Assembly: GCF_002113885.1 (NCBI RefSeq)
Contig: NW_018408899.1
Location: 2,118,278-2,182,277, forward strand
From: Mizuhopecten yessoensis
Lineage: Eukaryota
Direction of reading: 5' to 3'
DNA: 64,000 nucleotides
Made by a program: the position numbers and the translations under genes. Of the stretch, positions 1,413-8,955 are shown piece by piece (the first letter of the stretch is position 1; every line of letters begins with the position of its first letter). The notes beneath the pieces were generated by a model. The model was not told where the DNA came from and did not search any database. It was given only the letters and a program-made list of their open reading frames with translations.

Positions 1413-1759
1413 CACCCTTCTAGCAAACTAAAAAAAATCGTGACGAGTTTCAAAAGATCATATAAAATAAAGAAAAAGAAGATAATTTATCGGGCGATCA
1501 AGACTTTTTTTGCGAATTTCAAATTAAAGTCTATGATACCGCCATTCTGACCAAATCATATATCTATTCTCCGCTAAAATGTGACCTCAAATGATATATT
1601 GAAGGCCATGGCGTCGGTTCATTATCATTTTATGACCCTTCGATGCTTTAAATACATGAGTTTAAAAGCAAAACAACGAAACGTAACAGGTAATAGTATG
1701 GTAGTCACGTGATAAATATTATATAGTATCTTGCATGAATGTCATATCATATGATATAA

Positions 1760-2103
1760 GGAGGCACGGTAGTGTAGTGGTAGGACGCCGCGCTCGTGAC
1801 CGAAGAGTTGCGGGGTCGAGTCACGGCACGGCACTGTGCTGTATCTTTGAGAAAGATACTTTACTCCGCTTGTTCCAGTCTACACAGCTGTAAAAAGAGT
1901 ACGTGGTTGGGCAGTGCTAGAATTGTTGGATGCTATCTGGTGAGCGTCGAAATGAATGGCGGCATCGGCTGTGTGCTCCCCAGTGTATTGAGAAAGATAT
2001 TGGCTGGTTGCGAATGCCCTATAACCACGGATAATAATTTGTGAACCGCTTTGAGACGACCTACAAACTAGGTTGTGATAGAACCTCGAATTATTATTAT
2101 TAT
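1760..2103 (+). mobile_element. tRNA-derived SINE with CORE-like central domain and L2-like 3' tail
   Basis: A box TAGTGTAGTGG, B box GGGTCGAGTC, CORE-like GTATCTTTGAGAAAGATACTTTACTC...CCAGTCTACACAGCTGTAAA, tail TTGTGAACCGCTTTGAG...(ATT)n. Confidence 0.8.
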
Positions 2104-2695: not shown

Positions 2696-2738
2696 CACAT
2701 ATCAGATCAAAGTTGACTGTAAAAGAGTTGTCTGCCCT
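2696..2738 (+). repeat. Left terminal inverted repeat (starts CAC)
   Basis: Inverted match to 8911-8955; 26 of 27 nt identical over ACATATCAGATCAAARTTGACTGTAA plus the adjoining base block. Confidence 0.85.
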
Positions 2739-3759
2739 TTGGTCAACTTCGTCACGTTTCGCCTATGCATTACCGGCTCTTAAAGTCAGATTGTTAAGCA
2801 GTCCTTGATATATTGACTTGGTATCGTTTATTACTCCCGATTGCAGTTAACTGTGTTTATTTCGAATTGAACGAATGTGTTTGCATTTACATCAGGATCA
2901 GCTACACGTCGTAAAATTGTAAGTAAAGCCATCCGATCGAGTGGTTTTGCCAAAGAAAAGGCGGCGTTTGGTGAGAGGGTAGCCCAACAATTTATTATAT
3001 TTAGAAACTGTGAACAAGCCAATCACTTAATACCTTTGGAATGACATCATTGGAAATCACAACTATTCAGCCAATCAGGTTGGAGATAGATATATCTAAA
3101 AATAAATCCGTAATTTCCTCGTTTTCTTTAGTTGAACGGCAACTGGTGCTGGGTGAAAATCATAGCCAAGAAAAAATTCCAGTCTAACAATTTTATTGGC
3201 ACTTGACATATCACATTTTAAATCACAGTTTACATATTACAACCGTTCCTTTCCGGCGAAATAAAAAAAATACACACTTAGCAATTAACAATTAATGTAT
3301 AACACTATTTGTAGATAAAAATTAAAAATAATAATAAAAAAACAAATGAACACATCACATCAGAGATCTCTTTTAGGTTTTGACACAAGAGGACAGATTG
3401 TTAAGAAATAAAAAGCACAATTTGTAGATAAATCAATGTATTAGAAAAAAATACTTGCAACATTTAACAAAAACAAATAATACAGTGTAAAATCTCTTAC
3501 AATTTACAATGTGCTTTCAACAACTTGATTTATACATATATGTATTGCCATGGAATGTTACTTCATATATGCAGGTCAGGTATTACTTCATAAAAAAATA
3601 AATAGCATTATATTTCATAAAGAAATAACATGTGCTATAAACAAAGCAAACACATACCCTCACACATATGTAACTAGTAAGTTTTCTTAACTTTCTGTCA
3701 CGTTAAATACAGGATTACCAACAACAAATCTTTTTCAGCTTTTCTGTTCCGTGTATATG

Positions 3760-5874
3760 TTATGACTTACCACAACTAATTTTATTATGATCTGCACCAC
3801 CACAACATGAACATTTCAGTGTCTTTGATTTTTGCCTTTGTGAATTTTCCAAGATTGAGATTCTATTTTGTTTTTCCATGATCTGGCGCAATGCTAGTTG
3901 AGGTTTATGACAGCTGCCTCGAAAGTATTGTTTTGTGATGGTGTCATTTAATTTTTCCAGTCCTTGTTGGGTAAACGAAGAAATATCTCCATGACGCCTG
4001 ATTAATTCATGTGCATGACATCGAAGAATGTGAATGTAAGGTGTGATGTCCCGGGACTGAAAGGCTTCAACATACAGCAAACACCACTCTTTTGTCCGTT
4101 CTTCTAATTCATCAGCATCAGGAGTTTCAGATTTCATAATTTTCTCAATTTGAGAAAAACCATCCCATACTTTCTGCAAAATTTCTGCTCGTCCATCATC
4201 TGAAATGAGATCATTTGCACAGAATGATTTCATCAGTTTCAGTTTTTCTGGGCCAATAAGATCTCTGTACTCAAGGCGCTTTGTATCCCGGTTTACAGAG
4301 AGCGAGAAATGTATTCCCAATTGTTCCAAAACAGTTTCTAATTTTGCGACATGTTGAACTTTACTTCTGTCAATCACTCCTGTGTTGAAGGTAGTGTTTC
4401 CATTTATGTTATCAAGTGTTCTGAGCTCTGCTATAAGCAGATTGAAAAGTTTGTCTGTAATTCTTAGAAACATGTGCAAAGGGTCCACCACAACCCTCAG
4501 TGGACCAATATGTGGGAACAGTGGGGGATTAACTACAGAAAATGCTTTTTTACTAATTTTTTTGCGAGCTTTCAGACAACCGTCAGGGCATTCATACAGA
4601 GACCTAGCACCCTTGGTTACATCCTCCATTGACCATTCTAAATCTAATTTACATTTTTCAGACTTACTGCACTTGCAATACACACAGAAATATTCTGAAG
4701 CTATACAAGGTATTCCCACTGCAACCAAGAGAAACTTATAATCTCCACCAAGGAGTATTTCAATAGTAAAATCCCTTCCATCAACAGTGATAGATGAATC
4801 CTGTAATTCCCCAACTTCCTGTCGTAAATCTCTAAGTCCATCAGCAAGCTCACTGTAAGCTTCCTTCGAATTCATCACACAAAGAGGGTAGTTTCCACTG
4901 GCAGCTCTGCATCTCTTCTCATTGATCACTGTGAATGACACATTTACAACGTGCAGACGTTTACCAACATTTGTACCATCTCCTGATAACTTGATTTTGA
5001 TTTTTCCATCAGGTGCAAATTTATTATCTTCTGCAGTTAATGAATTCAAAACTTGCAAAAGTTTAGTTTTCAAGGACTGTTGGACTCCGAGGCCATTGGG
5101 AGTATCCACAATCTTAAATCCAGTATTTAGCTTATTCACATATTCCTGTAACACATGACGCCTTGGTAATTCTTTACAATACATACTAAGTTCGGCATAT
5201 GCCTCTCTGCTGATATTGAAAGTGTCTAAAATATAAAGCAATGCACTCAACTCATCAGAGTTTTCCTCCATGTCTTGCTTCTCTTTACTTTCTCTGAGCA
5301 CCAACACTTCTTTCTTGCCATTTTCCCTCTCAACCGATACAGACAAAGGTTTTATATTTTCTTTATCCAAGAATTTCAATGACTTTTTCACTGTTTCTCT
5401 CTCCACCTTCCTTCTTTTGGACTGACCAGACTTTGTAAGCTCAGAAAATTTCCGACCAAGTGGCTTTGAACATTCTGGTATGTTATTGTTTTTTACATTA
5501 AGTAAGATAGTTTCTGTTAATTTTTTATTTTCTTCTTGACATTTTAGCAACATTTCTTTATGTTCTTTAAGCACATTTTCACATTCATGTCTATCTACCG
5601 GAGCTTGCCATTCAAATGCAGACGAGGAAAGTTCAGAAAGAAATTTCCTGAATTGGAATCCACCTAGTTTACGTTGTTTTTTTGCTTTGTCTTTCAGCTT
5701 AAAAATTAAAGACTTCAAATTTTTCAAATCACTTTCAGATGGATTCACTTTTACAAAAATTTTGTCTTCAATTTTTCTAATGACCTGGCGAACAAAGTAA
5801 TCATTCATAGGTTTGTCTCGAAACTGATCATTATCAATTATTTCAAACAGAATCTTTTTTGAAAACAAAACCAT
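3760..5874 (-). CDS. RAG1/Transib-like DDE transposase, 704 aa, uninterrupted
   Basis: Motifs: NBD-like GRKFSELTKSGQSKRRK, SGD299G, GGD378YKFL, C397xxC400, DPLH467, ITPYIH615ILRCH620, QQGLE640KLN, and C-terminal CSCCGGADHNKISC (Cx2Cx4Hx4C). Order and spacing parallel mouse RAG1 D600/D708/C727/C730/H795/H937/H942/E962. Confidence 0.9.
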   Translation of the reverse strand: MVLFSKKILFEIIDNDQFRDKPMNDYFVRQVIRKIEDKIFVKVNPSESDLKNLKSLIFKLKDKAKKQRKLGGFQFRKFLSELSSSAFEWQAPVDRHECENVLKEHKEMLLKCQEENKKLTETILLNVKNNNIPECSKPLGRKFSELTKSGQSKRRKVERETVKKSLKFLDKENIKPLSVSVERENGKKEVLVLRESKEKQDMEENSDELSALLYILDTFNISREAYAELSMYCKELPRRHVLQEYVNKLNTGFKIVDTPNGLGVQQSLKTKLLQVLNSLTAEDNKFAPDGKIKIKLSGDGTNVGKRLHVVNVSFTVINEKRCRAASGNYPLCVMNSKEAYSELADGLRDLRQEVGELQDSSITVDGRDFTIEILLGGDYKFLLVAVGIPCIASEYFCVYCKCSKSEKCKLDLEWSMEDVTKGARSLYECPDGCLKARKKISKKAFSVVNPPLFPHIGPLRVVVDPLHMFLRITDKLFNLLIAELRTLDNINGNTTFNTGVIDRSKVQHVAKLETVLEQLGIHFSLSVNRDTKRLEYRDLIGPEKLKLMKSFCANDLISDDGRAEILQKVWDGFSQIEKIMKSETPDADELEERTKEWCLLYVEAFQSRDITPYIHILRCHAHELIRRHGDISSFTQQGLEKLNDTITKQYFRGSCHKPQLALRQIMEKQNRISILENSQRQKSKTLKCSCCGGADHNKISCGKS

Positions 5875-6021
5875 TTCAAATACAGTTTGTAATCCTACAT
5901 GTACCTAGGATAAAAGGAAGTTGTAAATGAACATCATAACTGAATACCACTGACTGAAGTGTTCAATGTCCAAAAAACACACAATAGGTTACCTAGAAGT
6001 GTTGTTGAATCAATTGAATTT

Positions 6022-8892
6022 TCAAATTGAATCATTGTTTAACAGATTCTGAAACATATTTTTGTTGCCTGGTTTCTTCACAAATGAAAAAGTTAGTTGG
6101 CTACCACGGTTCATATAATCTTCTTCCACATGGTCCGGGAACAATAAAAAATCTTTCAATGCTTTCCTTTGCCCTAACCAGTACCTGATGGTGGATGTAT
6201 CGATGAAAAACGAGTCACCTTGCTCATTTAAAATCCTATAGTCAAAACCGACTCCCAGTAGCCGTTCGAGGTCTTGTCTTTTTGCTATCCGATACACCTT
6301 ACGTGTTCTCGTCGCTTTGTGGAGTGTTCCACAACATTCCAATGGTATGAATTCCTCTGAAGTCATATACTGGTGCAAAATAATCTTGCTGTCACTTCGT
6401 CCTGGTGAAAGGGATTCTTTTATATTGATTTTTAAGCTTTGGATCTGTGTAGAATGATGTAGAGGTGTTGATTTTACTGCACTTTTTTTTATGTATTCAT
6501 CGTATCGATGATGCCATCCTGGAAAAAAAAAGAGCAAGCAAATAGTTAAGACCAACAAATAGGGTATTTAGGGTCTGCTATAGATAATGTAGATCTACAT
6601 TATACACAAAGTGTTTAAAAACTTCAAATTATAAAATAACACAAATTGACCTACCAACCATACATTTATTGTATTTGTAAACATATATTTTTGGCTTAAT
6701 AGTAATAAAACTAGTACATAGAACTTATCACACACATGGGGTGGGGTGGGGTGTGGTGGGCGAGGCGGGTCGGCTGTACTGTGTGCTTCAGTAGTCAGTA
6801 TGCTATATGGATATATATAGCTATGTATTTGTACATCCTGTACATGTTCTGCTTTTAAAAACAGTGAACTTGAGATTGAATGACAAATTATACAAACTCA
6901 TATTGCATATGAAATTACATGACAAGTCATGTATCTATATATGTGTAACAGTGTATCTATGTGAAAACTCAGCAATTTTATATTTATATAACATCCATAA
7001 AACAAAGGTGTGTCCACTGCCTGTCCAGACTGCAGACAGACAGATGAATGGACACCATGGAATTATTGCTGTTGGTCCCTTCCATTTTCAAGTGGGGCCC
7101 TTATTATTATAGAATATTAAACATTCCTATTGGTTTTTAACTCAAGGATGTTATTTATTAAGTTATTTCTATATAAACCAGGAATTTGAACTTTTTAATT
7201 TAAATTTTAAAGCTGGCTGATCAAAAGCATTTCTGAACAAAATCTGAAATCTACAGAAAACCAATTCTAATATTTATTCAAATACTTTAATATATTAGCA
7301 AAGAAAATCCTGTGAGCAATTGGTCATTTACTGTTTAGAGCATTTTTTTTTCAAAAACAAGAGGACCTTTTCATTTCATGTAAAATTAAAAGAAAATTGA
7401 AATATAGGCACTATATTATATATATACATATTTTTATCATTTGCATCGCTTTATTCTGTGTGGCCTTGAGCTTAAACTTTTCATTTTAAAAAAGACACAT
7501 GTACATATTACACATGCATGGTAATGTATATATACAATTAAGTTTGTCAACATTCTAGTGACTATAATTTACCTATGTAGTGAACCTTTACCATATCCTT
7601 ATACTTGTCATCATCAACAACCTCAATCGGATAAAACCCTGCTGTCCAGCTACGTCTTCTGTTACTACTTGACGTGATGGACGTGTTCGGTGGATTGGCA
7701 AGGTCACTGCAAAAAAAAGTTTTACATATAAATGTAATTTCTCAGCCTACCAGTAGTTTGGTTTCAACAAATTCTATTTCTAGCCAAGTCTTTTCCAGGT
7801 TGCACAGCATCAGATACATATGTAACCGGTTATATACGTCTCTGACAACATGATGTGCATTTGTACAATATTGATTATTATATTTTAGTAATTAAGCTAA
7901 TTTAATTTTGTTAAATTACTCATGTACATACATCAGTAAGGAGTACATGTACCATGATATTATCATTTTTTATTTGTTTTTAAGATTGTTTTATCTGCAC
8001 AGCATATGAATCTATAATGATGCACATCATCTATTAGCAGAGTTCTCTGGCCCCTACGTATACACCAGACTCAGACAATTTGACAGATACCTGGGGTGGA
8101 CATCTTTTAGCTATCTGTCAAAATGTTTAGGTCTGGTCAGGCTAACTGTGTATGTCATCTATGTTTGTAAAGATAAGATCATGATTATTTATTTTAAAGT
8201 AGGACTTTATTATAGGTCCCCGAGTAGGAAAAAGCTATATCCTGCACTCCTAGTATCTTCCTGCACTCCCGGATCCAGAACTTATACCAGTATTAAATTC
8301 TTAGCTCGAGGCATTAATATATGAACATTGACAACTGAAGAAAAAGATGCCAATGTGAGTTTCTGTCAGTCCATTTCAATTATGGAATTTTAAATATCGT
8401 ACACTGTTAAAGTGTTTAGACGGTCTCATATCAAAATCAAAGTAATGAACCCAGGAATCACAAGAATTCATTTGTTGCCATGTATCATTTTAATTAACTC
8501 AAGAGCATGTATATATATCATTATATGTCATTAGCTTTGTGCCGTTTGTAAAGAAATCATCCAAAAGTATTATTACACAACTGTCACCTCCTAGAACACC
8601 TAATTGTGACAACTGCACTCAAATTGAAAGAAGATGAATTCTGCTCTATCTCTCTTAGTCGTATATTACCGGTAGCAAAATTGCCCGGACACCGGCTTCA
8701 CTTCACTCGATGGAAATGTAATCCATATTAATAGTGATTAACATGAAATATTGCCACTCAGTAACGTATATTTTGTGAACTGATATAATAACTTACTTAC
8801 GCATAGGAAGACATCTGATTTCTGTCCTTTGAAACTATCTTTTTTGGACGAAGTTTAAGCGCAGCCGGTTCCTTCTCAGCATTCGTCGCCAT
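6022..8892 (-). CDS. Transposon accessory protein, ~240 aa, with an N-terminal chromo-barrel/Tudor-knot motif and an uncharacterised C-terminal domain; exons 8892-8801, 7706-7573, 6518-6022
   Basis: AAAATGGCG start. Canonical GT-AG introns with matching phases (2, 1) give an open 723-nt CDS. The motif FYPIEVVDDDKYKDMVKVHYIG|WHHRYDEYI is only assembled across the exon 2/3 junction. Confidence 0.8.
7804..7851. mobile_element. P-element-like excision footprint (17+17-bp TIR remnants, 7-bp near-TSD)
   Basis: ACAGCAT | CAGATACATATGTAACC-GGTTATATACGTCTCTG | ACAACAT; same TIR sequence as 1381-1405. Confidence 0.6.
8064..8144. mobile_element. Degenerate small foldback/MITE remnant in accessory-gene intron 1
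   Basis: ACCAGACTCAGACAATTTGACAGATA ... TATCTGTCAAAATGTTTAGGTCTGGT inverted repeat. Confidence 0.45.
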
Positions 8893-8910
8893 TTTGATGG
8901 AAACTTTTAC

Positions 8911-8955
8911 AGGGGAGATAACTCTATGTTACAGTCAATTTTGATCTGATATGTA
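8911..8955 (-). repeat. Right terminal inverted repeat
   Basis: Reverse complement matches the left TIR; the terminal base reads T instead of C. Confidence 0.85.

Follow-up and report, generated by a model that had tools for sequence, protein, structure and literature searches.

A probably intact RAG1/Transib-type transposon of the scallop Mizuhopecten yessoensis, with a candidate chromodomain- or Tudor-like partner gene and no target-site duplication detected

The DNA analyzed here, called the window, is a stretch of 64,000 nucleotides from the scallop Mizuhopecten yessoensis (assembly GCF_002113885.1, contig NW_018408899.1, positions 2,118,278 to 2,182,277 of the forward strand). Segment 2698-8953 of the window is, with good confidence, an intact and recently active cut-and-paste DNA transposon encoding a 704-amino-acid DDE transposase of the RAG1/Transib superfamily (Table 1). 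More tentatively, at a little less than an even chance, we propose that this RAG1-like enzyme moves together with a partner of its own that resembles histone-mark readers, and that its integration involves no staggered cut. RAG1 is the enzyme that builds vertebrate antibody genes, and its origin from a transposase is central to the evolution of immunity. What is new here is a two-gene transposon with CATATCA ends and no target-site duplication (TSD); the RAG1/Transib superfamily, the CCHC tail of the transposase, and a sequence like the published CthTransib_0091, which we matched by eye, were already known.

Comparison between copies defined the element. Copies on contigs C2316 (100% identity) and C5257 (99.86%) match it over exactly the same bounds and have unrelated flanks, so that three full-length copies with 99.9-100% identity are present in the genome (988 Mb, 82,659 contigs). 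Additional element ends adjoin N gaps in C3085 and C5407, and a right end is also present on the short contig C39231. The scallop contig that carries the window element is at least 2.18 Mb long and has animal genes on either side of it. Its ends (family 1) are inverted repeats beginning CATATCAGATCAAA and are built from a CATATCA tip, a spacer, and an inner GAGTTNTCTSCCC block, giving the termini CATATCA..TGATATG.

A paralogous family in the same genome (family 2, locus L021) encodes a transposase whose identity to the query is about 44% in a full-length comparison and 50% over residues 115-682. It is represented by two 99.9% identical copies of 6577 bp with CATATCA tips. DNA similarity to the window element is confined to the coding sequence, and despite the otherwise unrelated DNA, family 2 has the same tip and inner block as family 1. 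The consensus of the inner block in the two families is GAGT(T/A)NTC(T/G)SCCC, and its distance from the tip is 28/30 nt in family 1 and 28/43 nt in family 2. Because the block is common to both families at these distances, the ends are bipartite and their spacers may be unequal. Compared with the CAC-type heptamer of recombination signal sequences, the CATATCA tip has CA alone in common, with a second conserved block present at 28-43 nt. Family 3, from another organism's assembly, has a transposase 35% identical to the query and two 97% identical copies with the ends CATATCAAGAAGTT / CATATGAAGAAGTT.

The transposase open reading frame (ORF) had been singled out by a first-pass annotation made from the sequence alone, which claimed that it keeps the residue spacing of RAG1. 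We confirmed in the ORF that D299, D378, C397, C400, H467, H615, H620, and E640 stand where they had been placed. In a family alignment of 46 sequences with 21-51% identity to the query, the first seven are invariant and E640 is kept in at least 90% of the members. Invariance across so many sequences at such identities puts the residue pattern far beyond chance. The spacings D-C (19), C-C (3), H-H (5), and H-E (20) are fixed in all 46 members; D-D varies between 72 and 91, and C400-H467 between 53 and 74. In the window protein, C400-H467 is 67 versus 65 in RAG1, and D299-D378 is 79 versus 108 in RAG1 by the first-pass count. HMMER aligned D378, C397, and C400 to the RAG1 block GYDEK...YICTLC, and H615, H620, and E640 to YFHKTLAH...SEGNES. 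C397, C400, H615, and H620 are predicted to form a metal-binding C2H2 zinc site.

A Pfam search of the single 704-amino-acid protein gave no match, and a single-sequence search of PDB sequences returned only RAG1 chains (E 0.05-0.5), aligned at the claimed motifs. Two family profiles, A1 (12 sequences) and A2 (46 sequences), were then searched against PDB sequences. Profile A1 found RAG1 at E 7e-8 (34 bits) and amphioxus RAG1L at E 2e-6; A2 found RAG1 at E 6e-12 (48 bits) and RAG1L at 1.4e-7, the remainder being at the level of coiled-coil noise. HzTransib was not detected among the PDB sequences by A2. Six of the 46 members touch the Pfam RAG1 model (best 6e-5) and none touches the CMC model (CMC: CACTA, Mirage, Chapaev). 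The window protein itself scores below the Pfam RAG1 thresholds, and Pfam RAG1 (PF12940) had no match anywhere in the scallop genome.

Structural comparison agreed with the profiles. The AlphaFold2 model of the transposase has a mean pLDDT (predicted local distance difference test) of 89.6 and a pTM (predicted template modelling score) of 0.71. Foldseek ranked 43 RAG1 chains first (best E 1.7e-16), and gave RAG1L 2.8e-12, HzTransib 1.2e-11, and the P element 6e-4. The superposition on RAG1, RAG1L (ProtoRAG), and Transib that the first-pass annotation had proposed was done with VIA-align and gave Z scores of 27.8, 25.3, and 24.0, compared with 13 for the P element and about 9 for Hermes. The RAG1 alignment covers about 448 residues at 19% identity and equates model residues 201-684 with RAG1 458-1008 (DDBD through CTD); that of amphioxus RAG1L extends as far as model residue 702, within the CCHC tail. 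The model thus predicts an RNase-H-fold catalytic core with D299, D378, and E640, in a fold resembling RAG1 from the DDBD to the CTD. First among the ESM-Atlas neighbours of the query came eukaryotic clusters that carry no annotation, followed by RAG1_RNase_H clusters of arthropods and by vertebrate RAG1.

The window transposase resembles RAG1 and RAG1L in the DDE triad, the C2H2 zinc site, the LH histidine, and the fold (Z 25-28, 15-19% identity), and its CCHC tail resembles the CTT* of RAG1L. RAG1 and RAG1L differ in having a RAG2/RAG2L kelch partner and an N-terminal zinc/RING region, and RAG/RAGL elements have CAC-type ends and 5-bp TSDs, whereas the window element has CATATCA ends and a TSD of 0 bp. 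With Transibs it shares a RAG1-like transposase between bipartite inverted ends and, for HzTransib, the structural Z score of 24; Subgroup I Transibs also have a CTT1 tail and unequal end spacers, as in the window family (PMC9435367). Transibs differ in being described as single-gene elements with TSDs of 5, 3, or 2 bp, in contrast to two genes and 0 bp here. The family is probably a separate branch of the RAG1/Transib superfamily, nearer to RAG1/RAG1L than to HzTransib and distinct from both. These scores agree with the tree of Tao 2022, in which the clade of CthTransib_0091, the apparent family member, lies at the root outside RAG1L and Transib.

The first-pass annotation had also described the protein as a mosaic, with a RAG1L-type tail, an NBD-like segment, and no RAG1 N-terminal region. 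The tail C688-x2-C691-x4-H696-x4-C701 and GRKFSELTKSGQSKRRK at residues 140-156 are present as written. The lack of a RAG1-type RING/Zn region also held: residues 1-135 contain few Cys or His, have no Pfam match, and form helices or coiled coil in the AlphaFold2 model where RAG1 carries its zinc/RING region. For the NBD-like segment, a basic patch is conserved in relatives and the G of its 'GRK' is not.

The tail does follow the consensus Cx2Cx3GHx4C in the family, though it is not specific to RAG1L and occurs in non-RAGL Transibs too. This pattern was published as the CTT* definition of invertebrate RAG1L (Martin 2020, PMC7204232), and the same tail (CTT1) was later described in Subgroup I Transibs and RAG1L (Tao 2022, PMC9435367). 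The tail is found in 21 of the 46 members, 13 of these with GH; in the window copy the residue preceding the tail His is D instead of G (DH). It is also a generic zinc-knuckle pattern, with weak retroviral nucleocapsid matches in the profile search. Tao 2022 further reported the alpha11-12 region in Subgroup I and 'bacterial' Transibs and treated these as ancestral-type forms (PMC9435367). The mosaic is therefore an already described ancestral-type state rather than a novel one, given the CTT1 tail of Subgroup I Transibs and the same tail at the end of CthTransib_0091.

Two observations concern members with another ending. A tail-less subgroup (P0004-P0006 and L021, from Argopecten, Ylistrum, Pecten, and Mizuhopecten) has the basic ending ...KRKKRVYKDRK and no CCHC knuckle. 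Family 2 lacks the knuckle yet keeps its terminal inverted repeats and its two nearly identical copies.

An unlikely alternative is that the protein is a CMC-type (Chapaev- or Mirage-like) transposase that resembles RAG1 only since RAG1-type structures are the sole solved ones of the CMC+Transib clade. According to published work, C(2)C, LH, and H(3-4)H mark that whole clade (PMC12730594, PMC4079192), with C(2)C, LH, and H(4)H as the characteristic motifs of Chapaev (PMC4079192), and HHpred showed RAG1 similarity for the ESTA transposases, another lineage of the clade (PMC12730594). As a control, we aligned seven long CMC ORFs from the same genome. The local CMC transposases, in both subtypes, have D-19-C, C-x2-C, and H-20-E and differ from the window family only by H-x3-H. 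The first-pass claim of RAG1-identical spacing is thus exact in the ORF and not specific to RAG1, because most of it is a clade-wide signature; H-x4-H alone sets the window family and RAG1 apart from the local CMC copies. CMC elements (EnSpm/CACTA, Chapaev, Mirage) are further alike in their CA..TG terminal dinucleotides, and hhalign of A2 with the local CMC proteins gave 92%, E 6e-7, spanning all motifs. Such residual profile-profile similarity would be expected within one mega-clade.

The control nevertheless separated the two groups. Profile searches against PDB sequences and local Transposase_21-type CMC proteins did not place the window family better in another superfamily than RAG1/Transib, the outcome that the first-pass annotation had named as decisive: with the same profiles RAG1 scored 34-48 bits and the best local CMC protein 8.7 bits (A1) and 15.4 bits (A2), E 0.04-4. 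The CMC profile searched against PDB had zero RAG1 matches, and the ESM-Atlas neighbours of the CMC control were exclusively Transposase_21, DUF1258, or DUF4218, in place of the RAG1 neighbours of the query. Pfam Transposase_21 (PF02992, CACTA) recognised at least 47 loci in the scallop genome, none from the window family. CAC..GTG termini and a 2-4 bp TSD, which together with the Transposase_21 match distinguish CMC elements, are likewise not features of the window family, and Tao 2022 placed the apparent family member CthTransib_0091 with Transib/RAG1.

The search for TSDs revealed none at the three full copies of the window element (flank comparison), nor at the copies of families 2 and 3; this covers three families in two organisms. 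A consistent flanking repeat was sought at seven insertions of the three families, allowing boundary shifts of up to 3 nt, and none was found. The boundaries were placed where the 99.9-100% identity of the copies breaks off, and in all three families these points fall on perfect inverted tips. One insertion could be compared with a paralogous empty site. The C5257 copy interrupts a tRNA-like short interspersed nuclear element (SINE), and its flanks align to 1758-1783 and 1784-2079 of another SINE copy in the window, with zero bases gained or lost. CATAT was considered as part of the target and rejected, because such bases are missing from the SINE empty site. The window SINE (start ...GGCACGGTAGTGTAGTGGTAG...) is 84% identical to the copy interrupted by the C5257 insertion. 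The repeat to the left of the C3160 copy stops 94 nt short of the insertion.

According to Tao 2022, 5-bp TSDs always flank RAGL and Transib elements (PMC9435367), and a 2026 preprint describes some new dipteran Transib lineages with 3- or 2-bp TSDs (bioRxiv 10.64898/2026.08.26.747230). Our literature searches found no description of a Transib-type element with zero TSD. A value of 0 bp would lengthen the known series of 5, 3, and 2 bp and point to flexible end recognition and target joining in this enzyme family. Spy elements of the PIF/Harbinger group, eukaryotic cut-and-paste transposons, are likewise TSD-less (PMC4122938); they differ in having a transposase superfamily unrelated to the RAG1/Transib-type enzyme of the window element. 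It is very unlikely that the window element is an ordinary Transib/RAGL element whose 5-bp TSD has escaped us through misplaced boundaries or secondary rearrangement. The regularity reported by Tao 2022 and the single reconstructed empty site favour that explanation; the boundaries fixed by identity limits and inverted tips in three families, the seven insertions free of a consistent repeat, and the exact SINE site contradict it.

The second gene of the element lies on the same strand as the transposase and upstream of it, in three exons (0, A, and B; Table 1). An RNA joint skipping 6519-7572 (GT..AG, minus strand) was present in two runs from two studies, and one skipping 7707-8800 (GTAAGT..TTGCAG) in one run; the RNA evidence consists of contigs of transcriptome-sized public runs. 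RNA-derived contigs are also continuous from exon B through the transposase ORF. The exon frames, checked exon by exon, are compatible, and the ATG lies about 60 nt inside the right end, giving a gene of about 240 codons and a protein of about 212-240 amino acids. The spliced NCBI model P0205 ('uncharacterized protein LOC110466641 isoform X3 [Mizuhopecten yessoensis]', 212 amino acids) has the same exon A/B junction. Exon A is conserved in paralogous elements, where exon B is 37-44% identical. A 3667-nt contig of run X1 (depth 112) shares only 30 nt (3956-3985) with the 3' region of the transposase and then continues as unrelated sequence; it could be chimeric or derive from another transcript.

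The N-terminal part of the partner may be a chromodomain/chromo barrel-like or Tudor-like fold, an assignment for which the evidence is weak but coherent. Pfam Chromo matched the uninterrupted partner exon of family 3 at E 0.013-0.029, and the best PDB sequence matches of the partner were CDYL, MOF, Esa1, and Eaf3. In a fold model of P0205, computed with homologous exons as additional input, the barrel superposes on the PHF20 Tudor domain (Foldseek, probability 0.99, rmsd 1.6 A) and on Polycomb, MRG15, HP1, and SMN (VIA-align, Z 3.2-3.9 over about 40 residues). The C-terminal domain, a small alpha/beta unit of about 130 amino acids, gave no noteworthy match in Pfam, PDB-sequence, Foldseek, or VIA-wide searches. 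The partner has neither a kelch propeller nor a PHD finger and is therefore not RAG2-like in fold. RAGL transposons have a linked RAG2L, a six-bladed kelch protein usually with a PHD finger, whereas the sole linked gene of the window element encodes the putative chromo/Tudor-like barrel protein.

At least three of the lineages sampled show linkage of partner and transposase. In three scallop families the partner lies upstream in tandem orientation, and in family 3 and the P0008 lineage it is downstream and convergent; it was not found beside a degraded copy at locus L045 or beside the P0022-lineage copy. The literature searches returned no description of a Transib-type element with a chromodomain partner or a second ORF.

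From these features we can outline how the element might move. A transposase dimer would recognise the tip and the inner block, much as RAG and Transib do with heptamer and nonamer, and excision would follow their nick-hairpin chemistry. Both 3' ends would then be joined to directly opposed phosphates, that is, with a 0-bp stagger. The RAG2 PHD finger reads H3K4me3, and the partner may similarly tether or license the transposase on marked chromatin, as that finger does for RAG1. Translation of the transposase could use either a bicistronic last exon or a transcript of its own.

The range of the family bears on its origin. An exhaustive hidden Markov model search gave 8268 cluster representatives at E<=1e-3 and 961 at E<=1e-30, and the ESM-Atlas neighbours of the query were 97-100% Eukaryota. 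Named relatives are 'uncharacterized' scallop proteins of Ylistrum, Argopecten, and Pecten, so that homologs occur in four scallop genera; a word-indexed protein search with the deep alignment yielded neither new relatives nor named ones. Part of the Atlas cluster closest to the query (Mucoromycota) is assigned to Pfam DUF1280, a nematode family that may derive from this transposase lineage; the DUF1280 profile had no match in the scallop genome.

Tao 2022 reported 42 bacterial Transib-like proteins and used 'bacterial Transibs' to root the RAG1L/Transib tree (PMC9435367). Searching with signature strings of our family, we found one of them, CthTransib_0091 (entry 17 of the supplement of PMC9435367; FXLE01000091.1). 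It has in common with the family the blocks GVQQSL, K-L-[ST]-GDGT, LGGD[YW]KFL, Y-x-C-[IV]-[YW]-CKC, D-x-LH-x-FLRI, LTGPEK, TPY[IM]H, and QQGLEK, plus the CCHC tail. CthTransib_0091 was published as bacterial and single-gene with another type of terminal inverted repeat, whereas the scallop family is multi-copy, spliced, two-gene, and located in an animal chromosome. At about 1219-1940 of its contig we noted an unannotated ORF, convergent to the transposase, with the barrel motif of the partner (…KLYPVTV…RVKVHYVGYSSEHDEWKY…) and its C-terminal block. The same contig has a CATATGA motif about 155 nt from its start, which could be the true terminus of the element; the terminal repeat predicted by the authors is a different one, at about 401.

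These sequences, together with a match in a contig labelled 'Nitrospirales MAG', would favour a family truly bacterial in origin and presence, from which the scallop copies were transferred into animals. We regard this as quite improbable. The Nitrospirales locus was the one match of a prokaryote scan (L045, CBDBCZ010000010.1, 6001-7536, on a 439-kb contig); the transposase copy is degraded, with a broken frame and 38% identity, and because its surroundings have sparse ORFs and a GC content of about 43%, the locus is likely to be eukaryotic DNA that was mis-binned. The two Candidatus Thioglobus contigs printed in the supplement are 3-4.6 kb long, come from symbiont-type bins, and carry AUGUSTUS models with introns, and one encodes a chromo-like partner. 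The sister entry of CthTransib_0091 is a 3.2-kb contig at 0.19x, modelled with introns. Together with the Atlas taxonomy, the features of L045 and of the printed contigs suggest a eukaryotic family whose bacterial labels should be audited; the window element, for its part, is spliced and lies between animal genes in its long contig.

A domesticated host gene, that is, an immobile RAG1-like scallop recombinase, would account for an intact, transcribed ORF annotated as a gene by NCBI with homologs in four scallop genera, but is highly improbable because several copies with 99.9-100% identity lie at unrelated loci between inverted repeats, one having inserted into a SINE. Domestication could apply to some paralogs, such as the tail-less P0004-P0006 group, but not to the window copy.

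Several points weigh against our main reading of the element as a RAG1/Transib-type transposon with a putative chromo/Tudor-like partner and no TSD. No empty allele was found at either flank of the window copy, nor did single-flank searches to the left of the C2316 and C3160 insertions turn up an empty site, so that the 0-bp TSD is based on one reconstructed empty site and on absent flanking repeats. The chromo/Tudor assignment is below every curated threshold, the pLDDT of the partner model is only 70, and no partner was found near the L047 lineage. Besides the hhalign similarity to local CMC proteins, Chapaev and Mirage share C(2)C, LH, and H(4)H, and the CMC comparison was based on Transposase_21-type proteins. 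We matched the family to CthTransib_0091 by eye, comparing the A2 consensus with the printed protein. The position of the branch is drawn from scores and the Tao 2022 tree. The chemistry, the stagger, and the function of the partner are inferences.

The window element belongs to a deep RAG1/Transib branch and is transcribed, intact, and apparently active; its family keeps RAG1-like features that insect Transibs lack: profile-detectable similarity, a ZnC2 segment of RAG1 length, and the CCHC tail. It raises the questions of whether RAG1-type transposases recruited chromatin-reading partners more than once and whether the sequences published as a 'bacterial ancestor' come from bacteria in the first place. 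If our tentative proposal is right, the pairing of a RAG1-type enzyme with a chromatin reader would have arisen independently of, or before, RAG2, and the bacterial rooting of the RAG/Transib tree would reflect host DNA in symbiont bins. The element also offers a tractable two-protein system for biochemistry.

Table 1. Features of the element and its surroundings, in window coordinates
Feature	Position	Strand	Evidence
Complete autonomous element, 6256 bp	2698..8953	minus (genes)	identity limits between copies, unrelated flanks
Left terminal inverted repeat: tip CATATCA 2698-2704, inner block GAGTTGTCTGCCC 2725-2737	2698..2740	plus	copy comparison
Right terminal inverted repeat: tip CATATCA 8947-8953 (minus reading), inner block GAGTTATCTCCCC 8912-8924	8911..8953	minus	
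Transposase ORF, 704 aa, RAG1/Transib-type	3760..5874	minus	ORF, profile and structure matches
Basic 'NBD-like' segment, aa 140-156, with helices 148-172 next	5407..5457	minus	only basic character conserved
D299 codon, predicted first catalytic Asp	4978..4980	minus	invariant 46/46
D378 codon, predicted second catalytic Asp	4741..4743	minus	invariant; aligns to RAG1 GYDEK block
C397-x2-C400, ZnC2-type cysteines	4675..4686	minus	invariant; aligns to RAG1 CTLC
H615-x4-H620, ZnH2-type histidines	4015..4032	minus	invariant; aligns to RAG1 HKTLAH
E640 codon, predicted catalytic Glu	3955..3957	minus	kept in at least 90% of members; H-E spacing 20 in 46/46
C-terminal CCHC zinc knuckle, aa 688-701	3772..3813	minus	motif; 21/46 relatives
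Partner exon 0, ATG at 8892, donor GTAAGT after 8801	8801..8892	minus	RNA joint 7706/8801 in one run, frame check
Partner exon A, first half of putative chromo/Tudor-like barrel	7573..7706	minus	RNA joints, paralogous elements, NCBI model P0205
Partner exon B, end of putative barrel and C-terminal domain, stop 6022-6024	6022..6518	minus	RNA joint, paralogues, P0205
tRNA-like SINE copy, paralogous empty site, junction between 1783 and 1784	1758..2079	plus	C5257 flank alignment

Between partner gene and right end, the copies of family 3 contain an internal tandem array with a repeat unit of about 190 bp (L027 11217-13900; L044 11221-13180), and the copy number of this array explains their difference in length (7478 vs 6698 bp). 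The local CMC loci (e.g., L036 1810-4704, L037, and L038) have long intact ORFs of 660-965 amino acids and fall into at least two subtypes; so many copies with long intact ORFs suggest that CMC elements have been recently active in the scallop genome.

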